This document shows, piece by piece, positions 32,512-64,000 of a stretch of 64,000 nt of DNA. The notes under the pieces are model-generated. The model saw only the letters and a program-made list of their open reading frames with translations. It had not been told where the DNA came from and searched no databases. The stretch covers positions 30,804,773 through 30,868,772 of the forward strand of contig OZ037766.1 in assembly GCA_964035545.1 (NCBI GenBank), read 5' to 3'. Each line of letters begins with the position of its first letter. Position 1 is the first letter of the stretch. A program made the position numbers and the translations under genes. Origin of the DNA: Bugula neritina (lineage: Eukaryota; Animalia; Bryozoa).

Positions 32512-33165
32512 ATGATGCTTTCCTGTCTAAAAAGATCAAAAGTAATTTTTTTTGTTTTATTTGCAATTCCAAATCACATTTGTGGTAAGTTTAAAAAAAT
32601 AAATTTGTTCACAGACTTACGCAATTTTTTGTAACTAACTTTAATTGTTATTTGTTATACAAGCAAGATATTGACAGTGATTTTTTTATACTAAACAAAA
32701 AATACAGTCACACTTACAGTGTTGTATAGCCACTGCCTCAGACACTGTAAGTGTGACTGTATTTTTTTTTTAGTATAAAAAAATCACTGTCAATATTTTG
32801 CTTGTAAAAGTTAATAGATCTGTTGGCTAAAATTTTGTTGAGCTCAATGGTAATTTCTTTCAATTTGATACAATTAGTATTTTTGTAGCGGTTGCTAATT
32901 TTTATTGTATTGATATTTGTTTGACTCATTTTAAAACTAATCAAAGTCACTGCAAGCTATAGCTACGTAATGTTTTCAAGCATCACAATAAAACAATTCT
33001 ATTATGCATATAATTTTAGAAAATAAATTTTTTAAATTTTTATCAAATGCATATACCAATTGCTTGCTTTTTTAGTAAAATAAACATTTTTATGAAACTT
33101 TACTACAAATTTATTAAGTAAAACTGGATCGTATAATTTTTTGTTGAATTATCCATTTGACCGCA

Positions 33166-33260
<95 letters not shown>

Positions 33261-36200
33261 GGATGTCCCAATTTCTATAGCTCTAAAGGAAATTGTTTGA
33301 GTAGCTGTAGGAAAAGCAAGCTCCGTTATAATATAGCCACTAATGAATACTACTACAACACTGAAGATGTCTACCAACACATGGGAAAACACTGCCTATC
33401 AGAATGTCCGAGTAAGTGTAACTTCTTATAAAATCTTTATGATCAGTTACTTTAGGCTTCCTTTGAAATAAGCAATCAAAACATTGATTTTCTAGTGTAT
33501 GTTATTTAGTTACTACCATCAGTTTATGAAAGAGGGACTTCAACTCACATATTTAACCAAGGTTGAAGATTGGTAGGCATACCATTGTAAGCGAAATTAC
33601 TAAATAAAACATCCAACAAAGTAGAAATCACATAAATAAATATATATATTTCTGCTATTTTTTGGTTTACATGGTCAGGAATGGGTGTTGAACAGTTTCC
33701 TGGTTTGCCTAGATTTAAAACTTTTAAGAATACTTACACTTACAGCTCATTCAGAATTGATACTTTTGAATGCAGAGTAAAGTACAAAAACTGCTTGGAG
33801 TAGTGAAAAATTACTGAATAGCATTTGCATGTTATTTAAATTAATAAAATTATTTCAAATAATGCTAGCGTGCTTTTGCAGGTGGTTTTTATGTGTATGA
33901 GAGGAGAAAATGTGTAGATCAATGCCCACCAGGCTCCACAGTGTCAGATGAACAGCCGGGCCATTGCGTGAAATGTAGCAACTGTCCAAAGTCTTGCTAT
34001 TCTCAAGAAATTAATGGAGCCATTCTTCCAAACAGTACACATTGTACTAGGGTTATAGGGGATATAATACTACCACAGGGCAAAGGTAAAATATGATTGC
34101 TTATATATTTTTGTAATTGATATAATGTCTGTAGATAATAACGGGAAATGCTAAAGGTTAGAGTAGTGTAGTGTTGACTTTGCAATGCTTATATATTTGT
34201 ATAATTGTCTGTAGATAATAACTGCAAATTCTGGAGGTTGGATTACTGTAGTATGAGATAGTATGAGATAGTATGAGATAACATGAGATAGTATGAGATA
34301 GTATGAGATAGTATGAGATAGTATGAGATAACATGAAATAGTATGAGATAGTATGAGAAAGTATGAGATAGTATGAGATAGTATGAGATAGTATGAGATA
34401 GTATGAGATAGTATGAGATAGTATGAGATAGTATGAGATAGTATGAGATAGTATGAGATAGTATGAGATAGTATGAGATAGTATGAGATAACATGAGATA
34501 GTATGAGATAGTATGAGATAGTATGAGATAGTATGAGATAGTATGAGATAGTATGAGATAGTATGAGATAGTATGAGATAACATGAGATAGTATGAGATA
34601 GTATGAGATAGTATGAGATAGTAAGAGATAGTAAGAGATAGCATGAGATAATATGAGATAATATGAAATAGTATGAGATAGTACAAAATAATATGGGATA
34701 GCATGAAACAGTACGAGATAGAAGTTTAGTAATACGTAGTATCACTGGTTTGAACACTCTTTGATATTAATAAATTAATGAGTGATGATCCAATAACTTA
34801 TTTTATGTATTTTTTCCAAATTTTTTAATAATGCTGTACATAATTATAAAAACAATTCTTTAACGTAAATTGATATAATACAAGGTGGCTAGAATATAAC
34901 TACAGTAAATCATGTAGCTGGAATGCACCAACAACTATTGGAATCAGTTGAAGAAATTACAGGCTCTTTGGTAATTCAGATTGGAAGCTGGCCAAAAGAA
35001 ACATATGCAGTCACTGCATTTCCTAACCTAAAAAGAGTGAACGGAGAAGAATTAGCGTGGGAGACGACTGTTGCATGTGACCTTGTCGGGACTTACCTCT
35101 GCAACTTGTTAGTAGTCTATATAGTAGTTTACAGTATCTTCAAATATATTCTCAAATAGACTGAGTAACCCTCTTTTAACTCAATACATTTGTAATATCA
35201 TCTTTTAATAATTTCAACTCCTAATTTCCTTTCTTCTACAAACCATGCTAGATGCCTTTGCTTAAACTAATTGATAAACTTATTGCAATAATTTTTCAAA
35301 ACAGTTAAAGCTGCAATCTATTTAGTATGATGTGCCTTGAAACTTTAACAAACCCTATCTTATATTGCACGTTAAATATTTATTACCTCATTAACTGGAA
35401 AAACCAGTTGTTATTGTCTGCAGTGGAGGAGGAGGTTATTATAGAACTCTGGTCATTTACTCTCAGACACAATCCAATTACTCAGGTCTCCATAATTTAT
35501 GGTATGTTGGTGGCTCTGTGCAACTTAGTTTCCTTAGGCTCTCTCATCCTACTAAAAGCAATTTGCGTAGAACTTTACAACTTGCTGACACTGCAACTTT
35601 AGATCTATCTGGATTCAGCCGTACAGGTAGCTAGAAAGAATTTACCTTATAACAATTGCAACATTATAACTACTAGGCTTAAACTATGCATTCTTTTTTT
35701 CAAAGTCAATGTCTTAAAGTAACTGATAGCTTTTACTGGAGAAGATTTTTACTTATCTAACAGTAAATTTTTTAACTGTTTATTTCTGCAACTATATTTT
35801 GAGTATAATTCTACTTCAATTGTGATTTCTATTTTATACAAATTTTAGCTATAAAATATATAAGTTAGTTATACTAATAATTTCATCTAAAAAAAACTAA
35901 TTATATTTAGTTCTAACAAAAAAAATTAATTTTATTGATGCCTAACATGCAGCTACTAAAAATCAGAATAGTATTTTATCATAATTTAGAGAAAGCAAAA
36001 TGTGCAGAAGAATGTGAGACAGACTGTACTGGACCTGGTGATAACCATTGTTTTCGTTGCCTTGACAACAGCTGTAAACAATGTAAAACATATAAACAAG
36101 GAGACAGGTGTGTGAAAAGCTGTAGTGGTCCCCATTACATAACTGCTGACAGACAGGAAATGGTTTGTACCAGCTGCCATCCTGCTTGTAAGATTGGCTG

Positions 36201-39200
36201 CGCAGGCCCGGTGAGTTAATGATTATGTAATCAGTGATTTTTATTGCTTTATTGATTATCATCCTAAATAGAATGTCATTTGGGAAATAAAGTTTTTTTA
36301 TTCAAATAGTTCTTATGCTTTGTTTAATTCTTTTTGTTAAACAGTAACATACATGTCCAAATTATTAAAGAATACTATTAAGGAACATTTTACCATTACA
36401 TTAAAATTTGTAATAAAAGTATGTATATTACATTTTTAATCTATAGACATAAGATTTTTTCATAGTAAACACAAAGTCATGGGTTTAAACCCCCACAAAG
36501 GCCATTAGTGGTGCTAGGAAGAGCATCCAGTCATTATTGCTTCTGTGCCTCATTTAAACAAGTCCTTAGCTGATAAGTCTCAAACCCTATTTAACAAAAA
36601 ATTTTTCCATCACAAGGGGTTCCTCACATGTATCCTGGCTATAAACTTGAGTGATATTTTTATATATGTTTATTGCGTTTGATAAAAGTTTACTGATTAT
36701 ACTTTACGTGTTGTTTGCTTAAATTATTTTTTGATAAAGTATGTTTTTTTCGAACTATAATTTGAAGACAGGATATACCTGTTTTGCAAAGTTTTTAATC
36801 ATTTTAGTTAGACACTCACTGTACAGCTTGTGACAAGTTTAAACTAAGAGAAAGGTGTGTATTGAGCTGTCCATCAAACACTGTAGCCAATGAGGATACA
36901 AGAACTTGCTTGACGTGTGCAAAAGGTTGCCAGTTTGTGTAAGCTGCCTTATTACTCATTACTAAATCAGTAGTTTCATTTTATGACTTGCTAGTGCAAT
37001 GTTTTCTGGTGATGGTTCCAGGCTCAAATGACAGAAACATATTTTACAGTATTTACCTTCGCTTAACTTCAAATTAGACAATTTCAAGTCAGCAACTATA
37101 ATATGGCAAATTGTCAACTGCATCTAAGGTTCATAAAATGATGTGGGGTTTAAATTTTGGTTCCTAGACTTAAAATTAATTTTTTTAATTCAAAAATAGC
37201 CCAATGCTTTAACTTGTATAAGAAAAATAATCACCTGTTATAGACTGTCGAAAGAGAGAGTTTACATGCTGACAATACGTGTGTCAAGTGATGAGATCAT
37301 ATCCTGGGAGTTGGAATACCACAACTTGTGCGTTGGGAGTTGTCAGCAAGTTAATTACATCGCCATGGAAACCTTTGATGATAATGGGTACAGCATACAC
37401 AAAAAACAGCTTGGTTTAGGTAAATATTAAACATGACTGCTAATGTAGAAGAATATGAGAATATAATAAAATGCTTTTAAGATCAGGTAAATTTTAATAG
37501 CATGTATACATTTTTGAAATTTGATCTTTCTAATGTATAGAAATATGTGCACCATTTTGTCGTCAGCTTTCATATTAACATTCAAGATATGAAGTAAAAT
37601 GAGTTTTTATAACACAATAAGATACTGTAAACAAATGCAACATATTACCATAAGTCACCAACTACAAATACATGTAAGCATCACAAGTACAGACTTGTTC
37701 AGAGAAGAACATTTATCGATATGAATGACTAATTATAATCATCTTTATATAGAAGAAACATAATTTATGTGGTTTTTATTTTGCTATCACAGTTTACCAG
37801 TTATTATTATAAATGTTGAGGTATTAAGTTGTAAATAATTACTAGGATTTTCTTGAATTATTTTGTCTTGCTTTGAAAAATTGACTGTAATCTAGTATTA
37901 AGATTATCTATAGATTTTAATTCATTTTCTTATTATAATAGCTGTAAAAGCCATGGTTAAACATAAACATTTTACAATGTCATTAAAATACTTTAGTCTA
38001 TTTAAAAACATGTGAAATTATAAAATGCATATGTTTTATATATAAAAATTCAATTTATATGTTAGAACTATAATATTCATGATTAATATAATTGTTTGAT
38101 TTCTGCCTATGTAAACATGCTAATTGCTATATATTACTTCATCTTGAATATGTTATACACTATGTTTTAAATCTCTAGTCAACAAGGGGTTCAACTTAAG
38201 ACACCCAGGTTTTAACGTCAAAGGAGAAAGGTTTCTTCGTGCAAAAGTTGTCATCTCGTTGGGGAGTCCAGAACAGACCCAGGTGGACAATCCGGTTTAT
38301 TTCTACCTTCCAGGTAATATATTCACACATTCTATGTATGGCTGTATGACGTCTATACATTTTATGATGTCATGAGACTGTATGTATGCGGTGTGGTGTT
38401 TATAGTTTCTATGGAGCCGTGAGAGAATATGAGATAGTAAGAGATAGTAAGAGATAGTATGAGATGATAGGAGATATAGTATGAGATAGTATGAGATAGT
38501 ATGAGATAGTATGAGATAGCATGAGATAGTATGAGATAGTATGAGATAACAAGAGATAGTATGAGATAGTATGATATAGTATGAGATAACATGAGATAGT
38601 ATGAGATAGTATGAGATATTATGACATTGTATGAGATAGTATGAGATAGTATGAGATAGTATGAGATAGTATGAGATAACAAGAGATAGTATAAGATAGT
38701 ATGAGATAGTAAGAGATAGCATGAGATAGTATGAGATAATATGAGATAGTATGAGATAATATGAGATAGTATGAGATAATATGAGATAGTATGAGATAGT
38801 ATGACATTGTATGAGATAGTATGAGATAGTATGAGATAGTATGAGATAATATGAGATAGTATGAGATAATATGAGATAATATGAGATAATATGAGATAGT
38901 ATGAGATAGTATGAGATAGTATGAGATAATATGAGATAGTATGAGATAGTATGAGATAGTATGAGATAACAAGAGATAGTATGAGAAAATGAATAAAATA
39001 ATAACTTTTATTTTATGTAAACTACATATTTTCAGAGATTAAAATTGTCATTAGCAAAGTGTGTATTAGATATAAACTGTTTTATGTGATTTAAGCCATC
39101 AAACTAAAAAACCTCCATATACTTTTTCTAACACATGCAGGTAGAAGACTGCTTATTGAACCTGAAAGTTTTGGTGCTCAAGTTTTAGCTGCCAACTCAA

Positions 39201-42742: not shown

Positions 42743-44332
42743 TAATATCAATGATATCTGCAGTTAGACATCAATTGTTTCTGTTTTCTAAGTAACTGTG
42801 ACAACTTAGTGTTTGATATATTGACTGTCTCAGCTGTTGAATAAACTATTTAAAGCAAAAGTGTAGAATTTCCAATATCATAATGTGAAAACTTTTGGCC
42901 AGTTATATTTATGACAAATTATGCGCAGTCATTTATTAACTTTTTATTTGTATATGTTATGAAATATAGTAAATGTGTTAGGTAACAATATTACATAATT
43001 AACTCGAATGTATCAGATATATATTATACATTTTATTCATATCAGAGTAGCAATCTTTCAAGTGACAAGTTTGATGCACCGTTTACGATTATACTTGCAG
43101 AGCATAACAAAGTAAAACAACTAAATAAAACACCCTCATTTGTTAAAAGGAAAACTCTGAAAGTAAATTGAAAAAGCTGTGCATATATAAATATTTAAAA
43201 TTCAATACAAACTGCTTCTACCATATAATACAGACATAACCAACTTTCACAAGTTAAGAAAAAAGATGTGTTTTACGTTTATTTTTCTTGTTACCTACTT
43301 TAGAAATACCCTAAAACTTCATAAATTTTAATTTAACATGTAATTTTCTGATATTAAGTTTATTTCTATAGATAGCACCAACCTTATAATTATTAAATAG
43401 ACTAGATTTGTAAGAGCACTGCCTGGCTCAGTATCTTTGCCTCCCGTAACAGTGCTTGTGGGTTTCATACATGTTACAAATCATACCGTAGCAGTATGAG
43501 CAACATGCTTTCTAAAATAAATGTGCTGTTGCTTAAAATAGAACTTCACCAATTGTGCACAAACAAATATTTTTAGTGAATTTATAATGCATCTTTAAAT
43601 TAGGAGAACATAAAAGAACCAGATTTTGTTTGATATGTTTCAACAAGTTCACTGAAAAATGGCTTGCATGCAAGTTATGGCATATGACATAACTTTAAAC
43701 CATTTAAAGTTTCTAATAGAGTGTCGTGTTCATTATATTCACTTATACCAAGTTCAAATTCCTAAACACTTATTTGGCTCTTTCAGCAATGTCTATAAAA
43801 GTCAAGAAAACTTATATCACAATCACAAACAGGGATAAAGTTCTCATGGTAAAGCTATGTGTACTATAATCGATGAAATGTGACAGCAGTTCGTTCAGGA
43901 GTACACAGGTTTATGAGTTATAATATATCTGTAAAAAAGTTCTCTCCTGCAAATTTAACAATTTAACAAACCTCCTGGTATTGCAAGCTGGTGCATGTGC
44001 CACATCACAGAGGTTAATGGGTGATCTCAACATCACAATAACATTAATGTGACTGTTCATTACCATGCAGGATAATAAATTTTATGCCACACGTACTTTA
44101 TGTGAGCAAAAATCATGCAAACATGTATTAACAGAATATTTTTCTATAAGTGAAGTATATGCAAGGTATAGAAGTGAGTTTTTTAAGTAGGAACTTGGAC
44201 AAACAAGCAGCTTGTCCTGGATATCATAGATTAGTACATAATATAGTAATTATATAGTCATATGTCATATCTTATAGTATAGTACAGCATGATGTACGTG
44301 GGTTGTTGCCAATAATACAACTAATACATGCA

Positions 44333-46774: not shown

Positions 46775-47528
46775 ATGAGGGTTTTTATATTGCTGGTACT
46801 TTTTCTGTGTGTCATTACGGTGGTAGTGACAGCTCAAAGGTCATGTGGAGCCTTACTCCGCTGCCGTGGTTTTCGCTGCTGTAAGTATATTTGTTTTAGT
46901 TTGCGGCTAAAGAATTAATTACATCAAAAGTATTAGTTATAAGAGTATCTTAAGATTGCTGTGATGCAAGCAATAAACATTTTAACAAACTTCTTTTTCT
47001 AATACTAACCTAACTAAATATATATTTCTCATCACAATTAAACATTTTTTACAACCAGCTAGCGATGTACATTATCTATTGTACTTATGTAAAGAACATT
47101 GTATAAAACCATTCATTATACAAATATTTACCTATATAATGAATTTATTTATATAAAATTAGAGCATATAAACAATTGCGTATATTGAACGCACGCACTT
47201 ACGCATGCACATATGCATATCTGGTTGAAAGGCAGTGACCAAATAGGAGCTACAATGTTTAAATCTCTTGCATATTGCATCTTGAAATAATAAACTTTGA
47301 GATATGCTTTTGGGCATCTTGTAACTGGCAGAATAATATAAGTGATGTTCAAATATAGAAGAAATTTTATTTTGTAACATATTTCCTGATTAATACAATT
47401 TATTTACTTTAGCACGCAGATGTGTGAGCTGCCTGGGAGGAGCTTTCCGTGGATGTCGAGCAAGACGAGGTTCGTCTTTTTGCGAATGCGCACGTTTTGC
47501 ACGACGTCGTTGCAGACGTCGTTGTTAG
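46775..47528 (+). CDS. Secreted 10-Cys Arg-rich peptide, CSab-defensin-like (73-aa precursor)
   Basis: Exons 46775-46880 (GTAAGT donor, phase 1) and 47413-47528 (TAG). Translation MRVFILLVLFLCVITVVVTA|QRSCGALLRCRGFRCSRRCVSCLGGAFRGCRARRGSSFCECARFARRRCRRRC. Exons are GC-rich islands in AT-rich DNA; AATAAA at 47705. Confidence 0.88.
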
Positions 47529-48572: not shown

Positions 48573-48997
48573 TTAGTAGTATCCTTTGAATGGGTATCGG
48601 CAGTAACGAAGACAACCAGCAGTTACTCTTCTGCAATGAAGCTTGTATCCACGGTTACTACAGACACGTTTGTATCTGTATGTGCAGCATCTCTGTAAAT
48701 AACAAAATATTCATGCTATTGAAATATATATTACAATAAACTGCGATATATAAATAAAAAAATTATCATAGTAGTGAAACAGAGTAGTATAGTGTTTAAT
48801 TTGAATTGTTATAATTGAAAATACCGTAAAATAATTGCCATACATTATCCTAAAACAAAGATTATGTTATTTCACAGCCTTCATAAAAAAAATCTTTACA
48901 GAATACTCACACGGCCATAGGGACGACCTGCCTCAGTAGCTGGGGCAAAGGTCATCAGACAAACAGCAATGGCAGCAACAAGGAAAAGAACCTTCAT
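48573..48997 (-). CDS. Secreted 6-Cys Tyr/Arg/Lys-rich peptide, copy 1 (68-aa precursor)
   Basis: Exons 48997-48911 and 48692-48573, phase 0, GTGAGT..ACAG. MKVLFLVAAIAVCLMTFAPATEA|GRPYGRRCCTYRYKRVCSNRGYKLHCRRVTAGCLRYCRYPFKGYY*. Confidence 0.92.
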
Positions 48998-49187
48998 GAT
49001 GATTTTCTGCAAGTCAAAAGTAATAAATAAATAAATTTATTCCGCTAAGTCAAAAATATAAATGCTAAGACCTTTTTAATGCATAATTGCGACTTTTTAA
49101 GCTATTTTGTTTTTTAAGGTTGGTAAAAAAGAACTAAGTGAAAAAACTTGGGAGTAAAATTTAAAATCAAATTTAAAACCAACTCAC

Positions 49188-49255
49188 TTGATTGACTTTC
49201 TTGCTTGAATAAAAGCTCAGTTGTGATTCCATTTGAATATTCTGCTACTTTTATA
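49188..49255 (-). promoter_or_regulatory. TATA box and non-coding first exon of peptide copy 1
   Basis: Minus-strand TATAAAAG at 49255-49248, ATCACAAC ~25 nt downstream, donor CAA|GTGAGT at 49188; same layout in all four copies. Confidence 0.75.
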
Positions 49256-49663
49256 CTAAATTTAGATCTATCAAATTTCCTTTATTAAGCCAACCAAACT
49301 GACTTATTTTTTATCTTTGTTTCCTCAACTGTTTTTAATAGCAGATCATCTAATAATAATATTCATTGTAAAGTAGTTTAAGACAATATTTGTAGGTGTC
49401 ATAGGATCAAGTATATATTATTTTTAAATCAATAACGTTATAGAAACATGTGCCGTCACTACAGAAATATTGTGTAGTTCCTCTTTATTCCAAGTGCCTG
49501 AAGTGAACAACCCTTTACATGTACCGCTTTCTTATTTTTAACACAAAATAACAAAAGAATCTGTGCTAGCTGTTCTCATCTGAAACTTTCTTAATGAGTT
49601 TTATTTTTCATCTATTGTGATTAGTGTACAGTTGTGTTATCCGAATTTGGGTTTTAGTCATGT

Positions 49664-49673
49664 GGAAATCTCC
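49664..49673 (-). promoter_or_regulatory. kB-like site GGAGATTTCC (second copy at 50861-50870)
   Basis: Close to the Rel/NF-kB consensus GGGRNWYYCC with one mismatch; exactly conserved within a diverged duplicated block upstream of peptide copy 1. Confidence 0.35.
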
Positions 49674-52600
49674 TAATGATGATATATACATTAAAACATT
49701 TTATTCGAGAAAAAAAGGGAATTTATAGAAACATTATCTTAATTGAAGAGAGTATAATGAGTATAATCATTGACATTCTAGGATATGATATAGAAATGAT
49801 GCTCTAGTACTTCATATTGTACATTTGATATATAGAACTTCTTATTTCAAATAGTTTTTAAAACATGCCATTATACCAAAGGTTTTTAAATCAGATTCAA
49901 GTTGTGGTTTATGCTACACTTTTTATCAAGTCGAAATACATAATTATATGACATTATAATATTACAATGCATTATTTTGTATATATATACTAGATATTAT
50001 ACTTGTAGAGTACATACCAAAACTGCTATCAACTGAAGCAGTTTGCAATTAAAATTAAAAAAGCGCAAGTTTACATAGCTTTAGGCTTGAAATGAACACC
50101 GCAATGCAATATATTATAGTCTTCAAATAACATTCTTTCAAATGTAGTTAACTGTTACGATGTATCCTAATATTTTTGTTGTATTTTTTTAAAGTCAATT
50201 TTTTTATCTGTTGTAGGGTATTCGGCATTATGTTCAATTAAGCATGCATTACCTTAATTATTACATAAAAATGAAATGCACAATTTATATACATATTTTT
50301 ATATATAAATGAAAAGATAATTGGTTGCAGAAATGAAACTGTAGTAAGTAATAGATAGTAGGTAAAGAGGCCAAACATTTTTATTTTAAAAGACTTTGAT
50401 CTAATAGCATAGTTTAAATATTTATTCTAGATGTGATAAAACTGCTGAGTCCAACAACTAATTGCTACTTATAAGCAGCTCAACAAACCTCACCATGTTT
50501 GTATCGGTTTGTGTTTGTGTCTGGTTGCAAGATATGCTTTAACTACTAGCCAACTTGGCAACAGGTTTTCGAGTTTATTAACTGTCAAATCGTACCCTAG
50601 AAAAATGGGAAACATTAGAAATTGTATAAGTAAGTAGTCACAATATAAATCAAAATTCAGAGGAACACCATGGACATTACAGAACCAAACAAATTGACAT
50701 GAACTATTATAATTCTAATGAACTTACAATATTGATGCGTAGGTAAAATTCTTAGCCATCACAATACCGAAACCGATAGTTTTTCAGCGAGTCTCATTAA
50801 TTATCTACGGCAGTTCTATAGTCAAATTATGTGTTGTCCATTTATGAGTTTTCGTCATGTGGAAATCTCCTATTGATATATGTTAAAATATTTTCCATGA
50901 AGATAGAAAGAATTGTATTTATAGAAACTATATTTCATTCAAAGAGAAAATATAATGGGTATTGTTGATATGGAAGTAATATTTTAGTAATTAATATTGT
51001 ACAGCTTATATATTATATAACTTCTGTTTTTGATGGCTTTCGAAAAAAAGTCGTTATAGTATGCCGAAGGGTTTAAATCAGCTATAGATTCAAGTTTATT
51101 TTTGTTACAATCAAGACAGAATACATAATTCTATAATCGCAACATTATAATTCATTAATATTACTTATGTATGCTATGAATTATGAATATAATTTAGCAC
51201 TAATTGATTTGTCCAAACTGTTAATGAAAGTGACAGTTTAAAATTAGAACAAATAAAACCATACAACATATTCTCATAGTTATAAGCTATAATTACATAG
51301 ATTGCAATATAACTTTAACTATATAGTTTTCAAACTATATTATACACAGTTGTATGCTCGTTCGCTGTTAATATTCATTCAAACTGCTATAAAATGGAGC
51401 ATTGTGACTTTTTCTATTTCTTTAAAATAGGAAGATCATTACCGTTTGTTGCATAGAATAAATATCCTAATCTATATACCAATTTACTTATAGCTTTATT
51501 TTGAACAGATTCTTTATTTCTTCCACGTGCAACAACCTTTCGATTTTTACTCAGTTGTTATTTTGTAATCTACTTCTTTTCTGTATAGCATGTTGGCAAT
51601 ACTTTAGGCTAACTTTGAGCTATCGAAATATGCTAAGTCAACTTTTTATGATGATTTGACTTTGCGAGAGTCTCTGACATGGGTGTTAGGCTATATTATA
51701 ATGAACTACCTCTTACTGGAGGAGTTATATGAAGCACAAATTATGATGGCACAAGTTTTACTTTAATCTGCAAATGTTTTTGTCATCACTTAATATTTTT
51801 GTTTGAAATTTCGAAACCTATTATAAGTTGAAAAGTGTTGCCACAATCAACATAATTATGCTCACAATAAGTTATTGTCTGTCTTTCAATCAACGTGTTA
51901 ATAAACCAAAGAAGTTCTTGCTAAAATACTAAAGTGTGATATGCATAATTTGGTTAATCTTGCTGTTTTATTTTTTCTAGCACCCCTTGTTTATAATTTT
52001 TTGTTGTTGGTGCGTTCTTTATGTTTGATGTACTTTCAATATTATATTCTTGATTACCAAGTTTTGCCAACAACTGTACTTATTACTAATACTGATATAC
52101 TAATACAAGTAAAATACAAATATTGAGAGTTATATAATAATATACTAATTTACTAATACTAATACTATTATACTGATACTAATATTTATACTAGTACTAA
52201 TACTAATAAGAGTGATTTGATGAACAGCACTTGAAAAGACAAATGCTAAACAACGCATAAAACTTAACCTTTTGTTTTGTCAAAGTCAGTAATTCTGCTT
52301 ATTAGCACAATTAAAAAAGTTTAAAATAAACAATTTTTGCTTTGCAACCTAATGATTCAGTTGCAAAAATGATAAATTTTTGCTTTTTTATAACTATACC
52401 TATGCATGATAGTACAAGTTTCTCTGCTCCAATTTGTTTAATTTCACTAATTTTACATAGCTCTTGTTATAATGAATAAGAAAAAAAATACTGGAATTGC
52501 TTCATCCAAAAGAAATATAATTCAGATCAGCTTTTTTACACTATATAGTACATAATGCTACATAGCCAAGTATTTTTGTTACTCATTTTTATTACTTATT

Positions 52601-52791
52601 AGTGATAGTAATGACTTGTACTTAGAAGCATGTCTAAGGCAAAGGTTTTTGAATCAAGGATGAAATTTATTTAGGTCAACAAAACAAAACAAAGCATAGT
52701 TAATAGCAAAAAAATCAACATCAAATACAAAATTGTGAAAAATTAATAGAAAGTCCGTTCTCAAATCCAGAAATCAGTAGAAGGTCAGTTG

Positions 52792-53211
52792 TTAGTAGTA
52801 TCCCTTAAATGGGTATCGGCAGTAACGAAGACAGCCAGCTTTTACTTTACTGCAAACATACTTGTATCCACGGTGACTGCAGACACGTTTGTATCTGTAT
52901 GCGCAGCATCTCTATAAGCAAAACAGAGTTCATTGCATATGGCATGTTGTAATTAAAAATGGTGCGTAGCCTATATATTAATTTGCATCAAATGTCTAAA
53001 GGTAATATACACAACACCGAAATTGACTCATCATATTAAAAAACTGTACACCAATTATAATACAGAATATACAAAAAATTGCCAATGGCAAATAAAAAAT
53101 TATATATTAAGTTTTATAAATACTCACACGGCGATGGTAAGATGCCTCAGTAGCTGGGGCAAAGGTCATCAGACAAACAGCAATGGCAACAACAAGGAAA
53201 AGGACCTTCAT
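52792..53211 (-). CDS. Secreted 6-Cys Tyr/Arg/Lys-rich peptide, copy 2 (67-aa precursor)
   Basis: Exons 53211-53128 and 52911-52792. MKVLFLVVAIAVCLMTFAPATEA|SYHRRRCCAYRYKRVCSHRGYKYVCSKVKAGCLRYCRYPFKGYY*. Confidence 0.92.
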
Positions 53212-53399
53212 GATGATTTTCTGCAAGTCAAAAGTAGTATAACTAGTTATTATAGGTGATTGCACACTATAATAAAAAACAACTTCATGTGTACTATTTA
53301 AACTAAAGAAATACTTCTAATGTTACCAGCTGTTTTAGATTTGTTGCATGATGAATTGATTTGAATAAGAAAGTATAATCAACCTTGAATGTAACTCAC

Positions 53400-53467
53400 C
53401 TGGTTGACTTTCTCGCTTAAATATAAGCTCAGTTGTGATTTCCTTCAAATATTCTTCTACTTTTATA
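53400..53467 (-). promoter_or_regulatory. TATA box and non-coding first exon of peptide copy 2
   Basis: TATAAAAG at 53467-53460; donor CAG|GTGAGT at 53400. Confidence 0.75.
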
Positions 53468-54139
53468 CCAAAATGTGATATTCCTAATCTCTATTATAAA
53501 TCTATAAATCAATCGGATTGACATATTTCATCTCCTTACTTCCTTGCAGCTGTCTTTCAATAGCAGATTATTTTGAGTAATATATAATATATATTATCCG
53601 CTAATTTAACAGAGAATATTCATACATGTCATAAGCTCTTATTATTTTGCAATCAATCACTTAATAAAAAACATGTGACATCACTACCTAAATATTATGA
53701 AATTCGACTTTATTCCAAGTAACTAAATTGTACCACCCTTTCACATGTACAACTGTTTCCTTGTTTCTGCATAAAAATAGAATTCTAGGAAAACATTTTC
53801 CTATTCTCATCTACATATTATTCTATGATGAGTCTCATCGTTTATCTACTGTGACCAGTACATGCCAGGTGCTGTCCAACTTTGAGTTTTAGTTTTTTTT
53901 TCTCTAGGCATCAGATTAGAGTTTTTTCAACGCTCACCTATTACATGTTGCACAATATTATGGGCATACCTTGATGAAATGAATCTATTGAATCAAAATA
54001 TAATACACACATGTAAAACACTTTTCTTCTGCAATGAATTAATATGTAGATAGTTGCTATTTTAGCTGCTGTTTTTTAAGTATAATAATGCACTGATGAG
54101 TTAAGCTGGTATGACTGTATATATGAAAATGACACCGCA

Positions 54140-54282
54140 GTAAAAATGGCACAGGTAATACTAATGGCACAAATGGCAAAGTGGGCAAAAATAGCACATT
54201 TGTGTTTGAGAAAAGTTAACATCAGTGTGCCAATTTTATCTACTTTTTTCTTTTGTGCAATTATTGCCTGTGCCATTTTTAC
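54140..54282. mobile_element. MITE-like element with ~21-bp terminal inverted repeats
   Basis: GTAAAAATGGCACAGGTAATA ... TATTGCCTGTGCCATTTTTAC, with internal ATGGCAC repeats. Confidence 0.6.
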
Positions 54283-57200
54283 CTAAAATCATGAACAACA
54301 TGTAAGTATGACAAAGTTTAATAAACTATATATATGCTAAATTGTATCGTTATCTAAGATTTCTAATAATTATTATATTATTTTTCAAAATATCTTTAGC
54401 AAAGTGATTACTAGCAAATAGAGCAATTATATTTATAGTTGCTCATTGGAATTCGCATTCTATAAAAGCCAGAAAACTTTAAATGGTACACTATATATAG
54501 TATAGCCTACTATAACATAGTGTTCAGCTTGTAAATGAAAAATCTGATTTTATGCTTTACTTGAGAGGTGAGTAGTTGTTGTGGTGGGTCTTCAGCTTAC
54601 TTTCTTTGACATTTTATTTGCTCATTCATTTTCAGCAAAATTATAGCTGCTTTGCTTTAAATACCAAATCAATTTATTTTTGTAAATATATTCATTTATT
54701 TTAAACGTCTATAGACACATTTTTATTTGCAATAAATATCAAACATGCTGTTTTAGCTCATTTTTAAAACTAAAACTGTACAGCTAAAGTATTTGTATAA
54801 TTCAAAAACCAAAATGCTCTATTAAGTGCATATATAGTGTCTACATATGCTATAGGCGGATAGTTATAAACATATTTTTGTCAATTGTGAAATAGCATAT
54901 TGTTATAATTCAGTAGTTCAACACCTTTTTAATAAGTATTCTAGAGTTTTAGTTATTAGAAAAGAAAAACAAAAAAAAGTTAGAAAACATTACAACACAT
55001 GCAGGACACATTACCACAGATGATTTATATGTTTCTCAATAATTTTTCAACGTTTGAACCTGTGCACTATACATATTAAAGATCAATAACTCTTATTGAT
55101 CCATTATAGTTTTCTATGGCTAATGCAATGCAACATGTAAAGGACAATTGCTATACTCGTTCAAACAGCTAATATCTATAGCAACTTAACAAATATAATT
55201 AAACTCACTGAATAATTGTGGTAGCTTTTATAAGTTCTGCAAGCTGAAACCCAAACAGTAAAAAATGCATACATGTTAGGGAGAAAGCTCAATACAATTC
55301 CTATAAAAAATCTACAGTGATAGGACTTAAGCCTGATTAATGTCTTTAGAGTTGCAGCTGTGAAATTGTTGTATGACTATTAAAATACAATTATCATTTT
55401 TAGATGACAAAAATGATAAGAAAAAGAAGTAAAAAACTTAAATTCTTATACTTTCATTCATCTCCTTTTCCTTGGTTCCTCATTGTTTAAGCATTTTATT
55501 TGAACCGTAATATTTTATATAGAAACTAATATGGTACACCATCAACATAGTGATTTGTTACTATATACGCCTCTCAATATGTTGCATTAATAACAGTTAT
55601 TCTAATTTTTAGCTCATTTTTAGAACTAAAATTGTACAGCTAAAGTATTTGTATAATTCAGAAGTCAAGATGTTTTAATAGGTGCACATTTAGTGTCTGC
55701 ATATGTTATAGGCAGATAGTTATAAAAATATTTTTGTCAATTGTGCATGAAGTAGCAGATTGTTATAATTCAGTAGTTCAACACCTTTTTAATAAGTATT
55801 CTAGAGTTTTAGTTATTGAAAATGAAAGACAAAAAATTTTAGAAAACAGTACAAAATATGCAGAACTTATTACCAAGGATGATTTAAATGTTTCCCAATA
55901 ATTTTTCAAACATTTGAACTTGTGCACTATACTATATTAAAGATTAATAACTCTGATTGATCTATTATAGCTTTTTATGGCTAATGCAATGCAGCATGTA
56001 AAGGACAATCGCTATACTGGTTTAAACAGTCAAGACCACTAGCAACTTAACAAATGTAATTAAACTCATTTAATAGTTGTGGTAGCTCTTATAAGTTCTG
56101 CAAACAGAAACCCAAACAGTAAAAAAAATGCATACATGTTAGGGAGAAAGCTCAATACAATTCCTATAAAATATCTACAGTGAAAGGGCTTAAGCCTGAT
56201 TAATGTCTTAAGAATTGTAGCTGTAAAATTGTTGTATGACTATTAAAATACAATTATTATTTTTAGGTGACAAAAATGATGAGGAAAAGAAGTAAAAAAC
56301 TCAAGTTCTTTTACTTTTATTCATCTCCTTTTCCTCGGTTCCTCATTGTTTAAACATTAATTTATTTGAGCTGTAATAATTTATAAAGAAGTAACTAATA
56401 TTGTACACCATGCATCAATATAGTGATTTGTTACTATATATACACCTCTCAATATGTTGCAATAACAGTTATTCTAATTTTTTTACACAAGATATTAATA
56501 GAAAATGCTTTCTCAACAGCTATATTTGCTGAATAGCTGTGTTATATTTAAAAATCAATTTGCTCACTTCGAGGAAATGTTGCTGCAATTGAGATAGATA
56601 TTCTTTTTGTTATAATACATGTCGTTGAACTATGAGTATAATATACATGTATATATTTCTAGAAAATTCAATAATTAAAAAGAATAAGATAGCAAGAATT
56701 GAAACTATATAATATAATGCTAGGCAGCATTAGCAAGTGTACTAATACTTACAATGCATTAAATTTATTAAGTTTATTTTGCTTATTTATATGATAATTA
56801 TAGTATCAAAGCTGCTGTGACAAGTATTTGTAGCGGCAGCATAATCAGTAGAATGATTAATGTCAGTTAATTTTGCATACTTTTTCCATGAGCTATTAAA
56901 GGCTATTATATTCTTACAGCTGTGTTTATGATAAATCGTTGTTGGATAAATAAATAGTACTGTAATAACAATAATAATACTAATACTGATAACAATTTAC
57001 TAATACTGATACTAATAATAATACTGATACTAATACCAATGTTAATACTATTACTGATAAAAATACTAATACTAATAAAAGTGATTCAATGAATAGTAAA
57101 ATTGCAAAGACCAATGCTTAGCAGCAACTAAGTAAAGCATAACTCTTCTGTTTTGTCAAAATCAGTAATTCTATTTATCTATAGCACCATTAGGAATAGC

Positions 57201-57687
57201 TTAAAAAAATCTGTTTTGTCTTGCAACTTAATGATCGATTCCGTTGCAAAAATAATAAATTTTTGCTTTGTTACAACTATAATATAACTTATAATAGTAC
57301 AAATTTATCTGCCCAAATTTGCTTAATTTCACTAATTCTGCATAGCTCTTCTCATAATAAATAAATAAATAAATACTGGAGTTGCTTTATTAAAAAGAAA
57401 TACAGTTTAGATATGTGTTCTTTACACTACCTATAATATATAGTACATTTTACTATAAATAGCCAAGTATTTTTGTTACTCATTTTTATTGCTATTAGTG
57501 ATAGTAATGACTTGTACTTAGAAGCATGTCTAATGCAAAGGTTTTTGAATCAAGAATGAAATTTATTTAAATAAACAAAACAAAACAAAGCATAGTTATT
57601 AGCAAAAAAGTTAACATCAAATACAAAATTGTGAAAAATTAATAGAAAGTCCGTTCTCAAATCCAGAAATCAGTAGAAGGTCAGTTG

Positions 57688-58108
57688 TTAGTAGTATCCC
57701 TTGAATGGGTATGGGCAGTAACGAAGACAGCCAACTTTCACTTTACTGCAACCATACTTGTATCCACGGTGACTGCAGACACGTTTGTATTTATATGCGC
57801 AGCATCTCTATAAGCAAAACAGAGTTTATTGCATATGGCATGTTGTGATTAAAAATGGTGCGTAGCCTATATATTAATTTGCATCAAACGTCTAATGGTA
57901 AGATATACAACACCGAAATTGACCCACCATAATAAAACACTGTACATCAATTATAATACAGAATATTTAACAAAACTCCCAATTGCAAATAAAAAGTTAT
58001 ATATTAAGTCATAAAAATACTCACACGGCGATGGTAAGATGCCTCAGTAGCTGGGGCAAAGGTCATCAGACAAACAGCAATGGCAACAACAAGGAAAAGG
58101 ACCTTCAT
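57688..58108 (-). CDS. Secreted 6-Cys Tyr/Arg/Lys-rich peptide, copy 3 (67-aa precursor)
   Basis: Exons 58108-58025 and 57807-57688. MKVLFLVVAIAVCLMTFAPATEA|SYHRRRCCAYKYKRVCSHRGYKYGCSKVKVGCLRYCPYPFKGYY*. Confidence 0.92.
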
Positions 58109-58296
58109 GATGATTTTCTGCAAGTCAAAAGTAGTATAACTAGTTAATATAAGTGATTGCACACTATAATAAAAAACAACTTCATGCATACTATTTTAAC
58201 TAAAGAAATACTTCTAATGTTACCAGCTGTTTTAATTTTGCTGCTTGCTAAAATTATCTGAGTAAGAAAACATATTCAACTTTGAATGTAACTCAC

Positions 58297-58364
58297 CTGG
58301 TTGACTTTCTTGCTTGAATATAAGCTCAGTTGTGATTTTTTTTAAATATTCTTCTACTTTTATA
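58297..58364 (-). promoter_or_regulatory. TATA box and non-coding first exon of peptide copy 3
   Basis: TATAAAAG at 58364-58357; donor CAG|GTGAGT at 58297. Confidence 0.75.
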
Positions 58365-58986
58365 CTAAACTGTGATATTCCTAATCTCTACTATAAATCA
58401 ATCGGATTGACATATTTCATCTCCTTACTTCCTTGCGGCTGTCTTTTAATAGCAGATTATTTTGAGTAATATATAATATATATTATCCTCTAGTTTAACA
58501 GAGAATATTCATACGTGTCATAAGCTCATATTATTTTGCAATCAATCACTTAATAAAAACATGTGACATCACTACCTAAATATTATAAATTTCGACTTTA
58601 TTCCAAGTAACTAAATTGTACCACCCTTTCACATGTACGACTGTTTCCTTGTTTCTGCATAAAAGTAGAATTCTAGGAAAACTTTTTCCTATTCTCATCT
58701 GCATCTTATTTTATAATGAGTCTCATCGTTTATCTACTGTGACCAGTACATGCCAGGTGCTGTCCAACTTTGAGTTTTAGTTTTTTTTTCTCTAGGCATC
58801 AGATTAGAGTTTTTTCAACATTCATGTCTGTTACATGTTGCACAATATTATGGGCATACCTTGATGGAATGAATCTATTGAATCAAAATATAATAGACAT
58901 ATAAAACACTTTTGTTCTGCAATGAATTAATATGTAGATAGTTGCTATTTTAGCTGCTGTTTTTTTAAGTATATAAATGCACCGCA

Positions 58987-59163
58987 GTAAAAATGGCACA
59001 GGTAATATTGATGGCACAAATGGCAAATTAGGCAAAAATGGCACATTTGGTTTTGAGAAAAGTTAACATCAGTGTGCCATTTTTATCCATTTTTTTCATT
59101 TGTGCAATTATTGTCTGTACTTACCATTATTGCCTGTGCCATTTCTACCTGTGCCATTTCTAC
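58987..59163. mobile_element. MITE-like element (copy of 54140-54282)
   Basis: Same TIRs; right end has a duplicated CTGTGCCATTTCTAC. Confidence 0.6.
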
Positions 59164-62100
59164 CTAAAACCATGAACAACATGTAGGTATCACAAGCTAT
59201 GACAAAGTTCAATAAACTATATATATGCGCTAAATTGTCTCGTTATCTAAGATTTCTAATAATCATTATATTATTTTTCAAAATATCTTTAGCAAAGTGA
59301 TTACTAGCAAATAGAGCAATTCTATTTATAGTTGCTCATTGGAATTCGCATTCTATAAAAGCCAGAAAACTTTAAATGGTATACTGTACTACATAGTGTT
59401 TAGCTTGTAAATGAAAAATTTGATTTTATGCTTTACTTGAGAGGTGAGTAGTTGTTGTGGTGGGTCTTCAGCTTACTTTCTTTGACATTTTATTTGCTCA
59501 TTCATTTTCAGCAAAATTATGGCTGCTTTGCTTTAAATACCAAATCAATTTATTTTTGTAAATATATTCATTTATTTTAAACGTCTATAGACACATTTTT
59601 ATTTGCAATAAATATCAAACATGCTGTTTTAGCTCATTTTTAAAACTAAAACTGTACAGCTAAAGTATTTGTATAATTCAAAAACCAAAATGCTCTATTA
59701 AGTGCATATATAGTGTCTACATATGCTATAGGCGGATAGTTATAAACATATTTTTGTCAATTGTGAAATAGCATATTGTTATAATTCAGTAGTTCAACAC
59801 CTTTTTAATAAGTATTCTAGAGTTTTAGTTATTAGAAAAGAAAAACAAAAAAAAGTTAGAAAACATTACAACACATGCAGGACACATTACCACAGATGAT
59901 TTATATGTTTCTCAATAATTTTTCAACGTTTGAACCTGTGCACTATACATATTAAAGATCAATAACTCTTATTGATCCATTATAGTTTTCTATGGCTAAT
60001 GCAATGCAACATGTAAAGGACAATTGCTATACTCGTTCAAACAGCTAATATCTATAGCAACTTAACAAATATAATTAAACTCACTGAATAATTGTGGTAG
60101 CTTTTATAAGTTCTGCAAGCTGAAACCCAAACAGTAAAAAATGCATACATGTTAGGGAGAAAGCTCAATACAATTCCTATAAAAAATCTACAGTGATAGG
60201 ACTTAAGCCTGATTAATGTCTTTAGAGTTGCAGCTGTGAAATTGTTGTATGACTATTAAAATACAATTATCATTTTTAGATGACAAAAATGATAAGAAAA
60301 AGAAGTAAAAAACTTAAATTCTTATACTTTCATTCATCTCCTTTTCCTTGGTTCCTCATTGTTTAAGCATTTTATTTGAACCGTAATATTTTATATAGAA
60401 ACTAATATGGTACACCATCAACATAGTGATTTGTTACTATATACGCCTCTCAATATGTTGCATTAATAACAGTTATTCTAATTTTTAGCTCATTTTTAGA
60501 ACTAAAATTGTACAGCTAAAGTATTTGTATAATTCAGAAGTCAAGATGTTTTAATAGGTGCACATTTAGTGTCTGCATATGTTATAGGCATATAGTTATA
60601 AAAATATTTTTGTCAATTGTGCATGAAGTAGCAGATTGTTATAATTCAGTAGTTCAACACCTTTTTAATAAGTATTCTAGAGTTTTAGTTATTGAAAATG
60701 AAAGACAAAAAATTTTAGAAAACAGTACAAAATATGCAGAACTTATTACCAAGGATGATTTAAATGTTTCCCAATAATTTTTCAAACATTTGAACTTGTG
60801 CACTATACTATATTAAAGATCAATAACTCTGATTGATCTATTATAGCTTTTTATGGCTAATGCAATGCAGCATGTAAAGGACAATCGCTATACTGGTTTA
60901 AACAGTCAAGACCACTAGCAACTTAACAAATGTAATTAAACTCATTTAATAGTTGTGGTAGCTCTTATAAGTTCTGCAAACAGAAACCCAAACAGTAAAA
61001 AAAAGTGCATACATGTTAGGGAGAAAGCTCAATACAATTCCTATAAAATATCTACAGTGAAAGGACTTAAGCCTGATTAATGTCTTAAGAGTTGCAGCTG
61101 TGAAATTGTTGTATGACTATTAAAATACAATTATTCTTTTTAGATGACAAAAATGATAAGGAAAAGAAGTAAAAAACTTGAATTTTTATACTTTTATTCA
61201 TCTCCTTTTCCTTGGTTCCTCATTGTTTAAACATTTTATTTGAGCTGTAATAATTTATATAGAAACTTATAACATTGTAAAACATATCAACATAGTGATT
61301 TGTTACTCTATATATACGCCTTTCAATATATTGCAGTAACAGTTATTCTAATTTTTTTTACACAAGATATCGATAGAAAATGTTTTCTCAACAGTTACAT
61401 TTATTGATGAGCTGTAGGAATGACACAGCTTTGTTCCAAAGTGTCCAACGTGGGTTTCTCTTTTGATTAATCGCTTCCTCAAGGAATCCTGGCTGAACAT
61501 AACCCTAGTGTGTTAGAAGCTTATTATTTAAAAATCAATTTTCTCACTTTGAGGAAATTTTGCCGCAATTGAGATAGATATTCTTTTTGTCATAACATGT
61601 CGTTGAACTATGAGTATATACATATATATATATTTCTAGAAAATTCAATAATTAAATAGAATAAAATAGCATGAATTGCAGCTATATAATATAATGCTGG
61701 GCAGCATTACCAGAAGGACTAATACTTACAATGCATTAATTTCTTCAAATTTTATTTGCTTATTTATATGATAGTTATAGTATCAACGCTGTTTTGACAG
61801 GTATTTGTATATCGGCAGCATAATCAATAGTATGATTTGATGCTGGTTAATTTTGCATACTTTTTCGATAAGCTATTAAAGGCTATTATATTCTTATAGC
61901 TGTGTTTATTATAAATCGTTGTTGGATAAATAAATAATACTGTAATAACAATAATAATACTAATATACTGATAACAATTTACTAAAACTGATACTAATAA
62001 TACCACTAATACTAATACCAATAATAATACTATTACTGATAAAAATACTAATACTAATACTAATAAAAGTGATTCAATGAATAGTAAAATTGCAAAGACC

Positions 62101-62667
62101 AATACTTAGCAACAACTAAGTAAAGCATAACCCTTCTGTTTTGTCAAAGTCAGTAATTCTACTTATTTATAGCACCATTAAAAACAGCTTAAAATGAATA
62201 ATTTTTGTCTTGCAACTTAATGATCGATTGCGTAGCAAAAATAATAAAATTTTGCTTTGTTACAACTATAATATAACTTATAATAGTACAAATTTATCTG
62301 CCCAAATTTGTTTAATTTCACTAATTCTGCATAGCTCTTGTTATAATAAATAAATAAATTAATACTGGAGTTGCTTTATTAATAAGAAATACAGTTTAGA
62401 TATGTGTTCTTTACACTGTATGGTAGATTTTGCTATACATAGCGAAGTATTTTTGTTACTCATTTTTTTTTCTATTAGTGATAGTAATGACTTGTACTTA
62501 GAAGCATGTCTAATGCAAAGGTTTTTGAATCAAGAATGAAATTTATTTAGGTCAACAAAACAAAACAGAGCATAGTTAATAGCAAAAAAGTCAACATCAA
62601 ATAAAAAATTGTGAAAAATTAATAGAAAGTTCGTTCTCAAATCCAGAAATCAGTAGAAGGTCAGTTG

Positions 62668-63084
62668 TTAGTAGTATCCTTTGAATGGGTATTGGCAGTA
62701 ACGAAGACAGCCAGCTTTTACTTTACTGCAACCATACTTGTATCCACGGTGACTGCAGACACGTTTGTATTTATATGCGCAGCATCTCTGTAAGCAAAAC
62801 AGAGTTTATTGGATATAACATGTTGTGATTAAAAATGGTGCGTAGCCTATATATTAATTTGCATCAAATGTCTAACGGTAATATACACACCAAAATTGAC
62901 TCACCATAATAAAACACTGTACATCAATTATAATACAGAATATACAAAAAATTATCAATTGCAAATAAAAAGTTATATATTAAGTCATAAAAATACTCAC
63001 ACGGCGAGGGTAAGATGCCTCAGTAGCTGGGGCAAAGGTCATCAGACAAACAGCAATGGCAACAACAAGGAAAAGAACCTTCAT
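62668..63084 (-). CDS. Secreted 6-Cys Tyr/Arg/Lys-rich peptide, copy 4 (67-aa precursor)
   Basis: Exons 63084-63001 and 62787-62668. MKVLFLVVAIAVCLMTFAPATEA|SYPRRRCCAYKYKRVCSHRGYKYGCSKVKAGCLRYCQYPFKGYY*. Confidence 0.92.
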
Positions 63085-63271
63085 GATGATTTTCTGCAAG
63101 TCAAAAGTAGTATAACTAGTTATTATAGGTGATTGCACATTATAACAAAAAAAACTTCATATGTACTATTTAAACTAAAAAAATACTTCTAATGTTACCA
63201 GCAGTATTAGGTTTGCTGCACGGTGAATTGATCTGAGTAAGAAAGGATAATCAACTTTGAATGTAACTCAC

Positions 63272-63338
63272 CTGGTTGACTTTCTTGCTTGAATATAAGC
63301 TCAGTTGTGATTCCTTTGAATATTCTTCTACTTTTATA
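63272..63338 (-). promoter_or_regulatory. TATA box and non-coding first exon of peptide copy 4
   Basis: TATAAAAG at 63338-63331; donor CAG|GTGAGT at 63272. Confidence 0.75.
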
Positions 63339-64000
63339 CTAAACTGTGATGTTCCTAATCTCTACTATAAATCAATCGGATTGACATATTTCATCTCCTT
63401 ACTTCGATCCTTGCAGCTGTCCTTTAATAGCAGATCATTTTGAGTAATATATAATATATATTATCCGCTAATTTAACAGAGAATATTCATACGTTCATAA
63501 GCTCATATTATTTTTCAATCAATCACTTTATAAAAACATGTGACATCACTACCTAAACATTATAAAGTTCGACTTTTTTCCAAGTAACCAAATTGTACCA
63601 CCCTTTCACATGTATAACTGTTTCCTTGTTTCTGCATAAAAATAGAATTCCAGAAAAACCTTTTTCCTATTCTTATCTACATCTTATTCTGTAATGAGTC
63701 TCATCATTTACCTACTGTGACTAATACATGCCAGGTGCTGTCCAGCTTTGAGTTTTAGTTTTTTTACTCTAAGCATTAGATTAGAGTTTTTTCAACGCTC
63801 ATGGCTGTTACATGTTGCACAATATTATAGGCATACCTTGATAAAATGCATCTATTGAATCAAAATATAATACACACATGTAAAACATTTTTGTCCTGCA
63901 ATGAATTATTATGTAAATAGTTGCTATTTTAGCTGCTGTTTTTTTAAGTATTTTAATGCACTGATGAGTTAAGCTGGTATGACTGTATATATGAAAATGA

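Follow-up and report, generated by a model that had tools for sequence, protein, structure and literature searches.

A stretch of 64,000 nucleotides from the genome of the bryozoan Bugula neritina (contig OZ037766.1, positions 30804773-30868772; hereafter the window) was found to carry four intact minus-strand genes for small, secreted, highly cationic peptides with six cysteines, which form the left end of an array of 18 loci. With a probability of roughly 0.6, these genes represent a new family of host-defence peptides that are cationic and form long beta-hairpins with three disulfides, the fold being predicted by modelling and the function assigned by analogy.

Gene structure and peptide forms

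In each of the four genes a TATAAAA box is followed by a short non-coding exon and an exon encoding the signal peptide, which a phase-0 GT-AG intron (213-218 nt) separates from the last exon (Table 1). This is the arrangement described in the original prediction, which was made by inspection of the same DNA, and the genes lie where it had placed them. The second exon encodes a putative 23-amino acid (aa) signal peptide, its cleavage site being deduced from the sequence, and an N-terminal stub of 5-6 residues. The last exon of each copy contributes 39 codons and a TAA stop and then extends into the 3' untranslated region (UTR), ie the 120 nt first quoted for the mature exon is the length of its coding part only.

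Summed over the two coding exons, the mature peptides are 38-45 aa long with 4-9 Tyr and, in most copies, 11-13 Lys plus Arg and no acidic residue; Arg equals or exceeds Lys in all copies but one. For the four copies in the window the residue count confirmed the framework CC-x7-C-x8-C-x6-C-x3-C, the length of 44-45 aa and the lack of Asp and Glu, and a recount of copy 2 gave the 8 Arg, 5 Lys and 9 Tyr reported before. This long form is found in copies 1-11 and 13, and its aromatic tail is complete in copies 1-10. The seven C-terminal residues noted earlier are indeed common to the four copies, but are a hallmark of the long subtype only. In the short form (x7/x8/x5/x3, copies 15-18) the peptide ends 2-4 residues past the sixth cysteine (C6). 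A third form, x5/x8/x3/x3, is represented by three copies in a second assembly and by none in the assembly under study. It departs from copy 1 by in-frame losses of 6 nt and 9 nt at two separate places; RNA contigs show both of them, as loose ends at 53138 and 52834 and as the joint 48675/53138. The form is a case of presence/absence variation within the species.

Copy 18 (contig positions 30925040-30925467, locus L029) has an acidic spacer and then an Arg-Arg pair ahead of the peptide, which together are a candidate pro-piece, and the C-terminal residue of copy 13 is Gly, a possible amide donor. An acidic spacer with Arg-Arg and a terminal Gly are usual in precursors of antimicrobial peptides (AMPs). 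Copy 17 contains five acidic residues and is nearly neutral.

Transcription and splicing

Spliced transcripts of the family exist. The joint 52911/53128 (CT..AC on the plus strand, GT-AG ends), which the original prediction had singled out for a check against RNA, is present in runs from all three studies used, and the exon-1 donor at 53400 is spliced to an exon-2 acceptor in RNA contigs. For copy 1 the acceptor 48692 is used in many RNA joints; the joint 48692/48911 was not among the joints listed. In RNA-type contigs from the three studies the exons are covered at a summed depth of approximately 1e5, compared to about 0-30 in introns and spacer, and single RNA contigs reach a depth of 25,000; these values only hint at high transcript abundance, because contig depth cannot rank genes and the RNA label of the runs is a guess, and the reads are not assignable to single copies. 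Near-identical sequence at low depth in run X13, from a second organism, was not counted as an orthologue, as it may represent prey, contamination or a cryptic species.

Extent and variation of the array

The tandem array, of which at least four genes had been recognised, proved to be larger: 18 signal exons were located on both strands over 72 kb, reaching contig position 30925467. A mature exon accompanies 17 of them, with all six Cys in 16; copy 12 is truncated, with four Cys only, and copy 14 lacks a mature exon. Among intact members the six Cys are invariant. No member of the family was found elsewhere in the 216-Mb B. neritina genome, where the best match outside the array had an E-value of 7. 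The 4.9-kb units holding copies 2-5 are 88-91% identical. Within each unit an 860-bp non-coding segment is tandemly doubled (54750-56540 and 59630-61420 in the window); a transposon origin of this repeat was rejected, its matches being confined to the array.

The second assembly and JGI metagenome contigs carry more alleles and other sets of copies, showing that copy number and variants differ among individuals. An assembly artefact was rejected on the grounds that the copies are 89-91% identical, that spliced RNA is present and that the array recurs in two further data sets.

The signal exons are near-uniform, with a proportion of synonymous differences (pS) of 0.06, perhaps as a result of gene conversion. 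The mature exon is more variable (pS 0.31; non-synonymous proportion, pN, 0.18), with a ratio of non-synonymous to synonymous change (dN/dS) of about 0.5 when pooled over pairs which are not independent, and the reading frames are shown to be under purifying selection. The window also contains a probable distant relic of the family, whose signal-like exon has in-frame stops at codons 12 and 26. It is probably a fixed pseudogene, because the codon-12 stop is common to both assemblies.

Search for relatives

The window exons were searched singly rather than joined, and the database proteins P0001, P0003 and P0005 served as full-length queries. The homologues recovered were the B. neritina hypothetical proteins EB796_006327, 006328, 006330, 006331, 006332, 003159 and 003161, ie the same family from another assembly, unnamed and in several cases with wrong N-terminal extensions or fused copies. 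A literature search found no description of the family or of these proteins. When 1.84 billion protein representatives were searched with the family profile, an E-value of 0.001 was passed by four entries only: three from B. neritina and a repeat protein without relation to the family, P0004 from Symbiodinium (4e-4), which was rejected as a chance match of Cys, Gly and Tyr.

Pfam gave no family above cut-off for exons, alignment members or the database precursor. The best match was the myticin prepro family PF10690, whose E-value of 0.88 is far under the required significance. A PDB sequence search returned nothing for one exon, and with the profile its best match was a Kazal domain at a non-significant 0.53. 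No usable match was obtained from the ESM Atlas by features, and a metagenome scan with P0001 confirmed no locus, spliced genes being poorly detected by such a scan. The expectation that no characterised family would be matched was thus borne out by Pfam, PDB, the protein representatives and the ESM Atlas. Family and framework appear to be undescribed within the databases searched, in which other bryozoan genomes are probably poorly represented. The literature search returned no gene-encoded AMP family that is both characterised and specific to bryozoans; for Flustra, transcripts of big defensins have been reported (PMC7203481).

Predicted fold and disulfides

For the short x7/x5 form, AlphaFold2 (AF2) predicted one long beta-hairpin with strands at residues 9-20 and 23-35, a mean predicted local distance difference test (pLDDT) score of 76 and a core at 86-88. 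The turn is formed by two residues at the conserved Gly-Tyr, and C3 and C4 are directly opposite each other, symmetric about it. In the x7/x5 and x5/x3 forms this register places C5 across from the Tyr at C2+2 and C6 across from the residue preceding C1; in the long form an additional residue, Gly in most cases, is accommodated as a bulge. The 6-nt and 9-nt deletions of the x5/x3 form fall on facing strands and restore the x7/x5 register. A hairpin predicts such paired loss, and the deletions therefore support it by an argument which is independent of AF2 and is based on one event.

The predicted fold is a single long antiparallel beta-hairpin, with a predicted C3-C4 bond near the turn that fits the model register. 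The outer bonds may be either 1-6/2-5 or 1-5/2-6, since both are compatible with the positions of C5 and C6. In Ib-AMP1, a peptide of the plant Impatiens balsamina, the CC...CX3C motif is closed by first-to-first and second-to-second pairing (PMC10136942), which would correspond to 1-5/2-6 here. The nested 1-6/2-5/3-4 ladder of the original prediction consequently agrees with the model in its inner rung, while its outer connectivity fits no better than the other pairing. Fold searches of two AF2 models, of the short and the long form, against PDB, VIA and Atlas retrieved generic hairpins only, with a best Z of 2.5.

Other features of the window

Exons for receptor L and furin-like domains, as in ectodomains of the EGFR or insulin-receptor type, are repeated at 23099-23698 and 33141-36219, and two tandem plus-strand genes for rolling-stone (PF21534) membrane proteins lie at 16427-16906 and 20899-21378. 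The features of the peptide family are collected in Table 1.

Table 1. Elements of the six-cysteine peptide family. Positions are those of the window except for the x5/x3-form loci, which belong to the second assembly.
Feature	Position	Strand	Details	Basis
Copy 1, TATA box and non-coding exon 1	49188..49255	-	TATAAAA 49255; donor 49188	sequence; exon-1 RNA joints
Copy 1, exon 2	48911..49006	-	ATG 48997; 23-aa signal peptide, 6-aa stub; phase-0 donor	RNA cover; cleavage inferred
Copy 1, exon 3, coding part	48573..48692	-	exon start 48692; 39-aa six-Cys core, Tyr-rich tail, TAA	acceptor 48692 in RNA joints
Copy 2, TATA box and non-coding exon 1	53400..53467	-	TATAAAA 53467; donor 53400	donor in CT..AC RNA joint
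Copy 2, exon 2	53128..53220	-	ATG 53211; signal peptide, 5-aa stub	sequence and RNA
Copy 2, exon 3, coding part	52792..52911	-	exon start 52911; AATAAA in 3' UTR 52671	joint 52911/53128 in three RNA runs
Copy 3, TATA box and non-coding exon 1	58297..58364	-	TATAAAA 58364; donor 58297	sequence
Copy 3, exon 2	58025..58117	-	ATG 58108	sequence
Copy 3, exon 3, coding part	57688..57807	-	exon start 57807; AATAAA in 3' UTR 57567	sequence
Copy 4, TATA box and non-coding exon 1	63272..63338	-	TATAAAA 63338; donor 63272	sequence
Copy 4, exon 2	63001..63093	-	ATG 63084	sequence
Copy 4, exon 3, coding part	62668..62787	-	exon start 62787; AATAAA in 3' UTR 62547	sequence
Tandem duplication units of ~4.9 kb	52100..64000	.	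89-91% identical; hold copies 2-4; run past window edge into copies 5-18	
Probable distant paralogue (pseudogene)	43428..43847	-	phase-0 exon CC-x7-C-x8-C, short end	family profile E 0.002 (one comparison)
x5/x3-form loci	L033 728-1017; L033 4846-5260; L036 10476-10902			

Comparison with known peptide classes

In line with beta-hairpin AMPs as reviewed in PMC13001179, the Bugula peptides have at least two Cys pairs, a positive charge and a preference for Arg over Lys. Like tachyplesin, polyphemusin, gomesin, capitellacin and protegrin, they are cationic and rich in Arg, Tyr and Val, and the disulfide-stapled single hairpin of that group is predicted for them. C-x3-C near the C-terminus also occurs in that group. 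They are unlike these AMPs in their three predicted disulfides, the adjacent CC and the 8 residues between the inner Cys, as well as in having neither the acidic C-terminal nor the BRICHOS pro-domain, and there is no sequence match between them.

Ib-AMP1-4 of I. balsamina are likewise Arg-rich, and their motif CCX8CX3C (PMC10136942) also opens with CC close to the N-terminus and finishes with CX3C. However, the plant peptides have four Cys in 20 aa, form a loop without beta structure and are released from a polyprotein, whereas the Bugula genes encode one six-Cys peptide each, with one more Cys pair and a long predicted hairpin lying between CC and CX3C; the resemblance is one of convergence, not homology. 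Six-Cys thionins also have an N-terminal CC, six Cys, a cationic character and a length of approximately 45 aa. They are helical hairpins with longer spacings, whereas both AF2 models are all-beta and contain no helix, and no thionin was matched in Pfam or PDB, so that the likeness to thionins originally suggested is not sustained.

The Bugula genes have in common with the cysteine-stabilised alpha-beta (CS-alpha-beta) defensins, myticins, mytilins, big and beta-defensins and macins that a signal peptide precedes a mature region which is cationic and rich in Cys, and that the lophotrochozoan gene family is a variable one. Differences from this group are that the Bugula peptides have six Cys only and lack a C-terminal propeptide. 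Their framework is unlike that of CS-alpha-beta defensins, myticins and mytilins in having no C-x-C and a C-x3-C that is terminal rather than early, and unlike that of big and beta-defensins in that the CC is N-terminal rather than C-terminal. Pfam gave no match above cut-off to any of these, and the spacing is indeed distinct from that of CS-alpha-beta defensins, big defensins, macins and mytilins, as had been claimed.

A probable role in host defence and its alternatives

A role in host defence is favoured by the near-constant signal exon and variable mature exon, the six invariant Cys, the high charge, the predicted hairpin, the precursor features of copies 13 and 18 and the transcription observed in three studies. 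After removal of the signal peptide, the 38-45-aa product would fold as a long antiparallel hairpin turning at Gly-Tyr, with C3-C4 stapling the strands near the turn and C1 and C2 bonded to C5 and C6 at the open end. A net charge of approximately +11 to +13, together with 4-9 Tyr, would draw this rigid hairpin to anionic microbial surfaces, such as lipopolysaccharide, teichoic acid, anionic lipid or the fungal wall, where it might permeabilise membranes or enter cells in the manner of tachyplesin- and gomesin-type hairpins, possibly with insertion of Tyr. With charge on both faces and no Trp, the model points to binding at the surface or to slow permeabilisation more readily than to strong lysis. 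Birth-and-death duplication would be the source of the diversity in stub, strand length and tail.

Approximately 1 kb from copy 1 there is a two-exon plus-strand gene (46775-46880 and 47413-47528, phase-1 intron) for a secreted, very Arg-rich peptide with 10 Cys. With its C-x3-C and C-x-C, this peptide is reminiscent of a CS-alpha-beta defensin that has additional Cys. The gene is single-copy in the genome and has no Pfam match; its position hints at a defence-peptide neighbourhood.

Several observations weigh against the host-defence reading. The 27 families of beta-hairpin AMPs are all 11-25 aa long with charges of +1 to +8 (2026 review, PMC13001179), and the Bugula peptides, at 38-45 aa and, in most copies, +11 to +13, are outside both ranges; membership of that class also requires experimental evidence beyond models (PMC13001179), and the defence role is here argued from likeness to the class. 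The AF2 model of the long form is poor (pLDDT 58), although it is all-beta with its turn at the same Gly-Tyr; the extended hairpin of the original prediction draws its support from the short-form model and the paired deletions. The amphipathicity of the modelled hairpin is weak, with cationic residues on both faces and no Trp. A family-wide dN/dS above 1 was not found in the pooled pairs, leaving positive selection unsupported. High expression and 20% Tyr equally fit a structural secretion.

Such a secretion would be a Tyr-, Arg- and Lys-rich component of the cuticle, frontal membrane or larval adhesive, hardened through oxidation of tyrosine to DOPA or dityrosine as in small mussel foot proteins. 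The 8-9 Tyr in 44-45 aa and the aromatic C-terminal tail would suit this role, as would the very deep RNA cover in three studies and the higher dosage expected from several near-identical copies. We nevertheless regard it as unlikely, since Cys held invariant at a fixed register, a predicted folded hairpin and variable residues between the Cys are better suited to a soluble bioactive peptide, there are no repeats, and the short forms retain the Cys frame while losing the tail and half of the Tyr.

The original prediction had overlooked a Kazal-like motif, on which a further alternative rests. The profile matches the Kazal inhibitor CrSPI-1 with an E-value of 0.53. In the x7 forms, though not in the x5/x3 form, C2-x7-C3 and Tyr-x3-C4 can be aligned with it, as can a Tyr/Lys in front of Val-Cys and the Gly at C3+4; C4-x6-C5 occurs in several Bugula Kazal domains, and the hhalign score of 15.8 against these was reached by 1 of 200 Cys-preserving shuffles. 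The peptides could then be miniaturised, Kazal-derived serine-protease inhibitors with the near-invariant Tyr at C2+2 as P1. This is distinctly unlikely. The match was picked post hoc as the best of 177,635 sequences, the hhalign probability is 7%, Pfam gives no Kazal match and the array was not listed in a PF00050 search of the genome. C3-C4 spans x8 (Kazal x10) and C5-C6 x3 (Kazal about x14), Pro-Val-Cys-Gly is absent, with neither Pro nor Gly at that place, C1 and C2 are adjacent, and the exon layout differs from that of Kazal genes. Kazal disulfides are I-V, II-IV and III-VI, and the Kazal fold is a central helix on an antiparallel sheet. The helix is called characteristic in PMC3082530; neither AF2 model has one. 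Finally, the x5/x3 form, which is transcribed and multi-copy, has lost the loop that would be reactive. Elsewhere in the genome (C7:3273000-3294000) a cluster of at least 14 exons for Kazal half-domains probably makes up one multi-Kazal inhibitor gene.

A constant signal exon and a variable mature exon in small, secreted, disulfide-rich peptides also typify toxin arrays, and the CC-C-C-C-C pattern occurs with other spacing in conotoxin framework IV. The peptides might on this basis be chemical deterrents against predators, epibionts or competing settlers, acting on animal membranes or ion channels. We give this little credence, as no search matched a toxin family, no delivery organ is known in bryozoans, and the uniform high charge suits microbial surfaces better than a specific receptor. 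There is a slim chance that they are symbiont-control effectors, comparable to the nodule-specific (NCR) peptides of legumes or bacteriocyte-specific (BCR) peptides of aphids, which would confine or regulate Candidatus Endobugula sertula, the bryostatin-producing symbiont of B. neritina, through a three-disulfide hairpin of an undescribed long type, its strand length tuned by the paired deletions. Signalling, as a hormone or allorecognition-type ligand, is consistent with the variation between individuals, but is very improbable given the very deep RNA cover, the extreme charge and the lack of cleavage or amidation sites conserved across copies.

Among marine invertebrates, arrays of cationic, Cys-rich peptides restricted to one lineage are common; what appears to be undescribed here is the family and its framework. 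If active as host-defence peptides, they would constitute a scaffold nearly twice as long as the known beta-hairpin AMPs and held by three disulfides. They would also provide a natural series of approximately 25 variants in which strand length, tail and charge differ. The peptides are short enough for synthesis. B. neritina serves as a model of fouling and hosts the bryostatin producer, and an effector array of this kind would make its control of surface microbes and of its symbiont testable.

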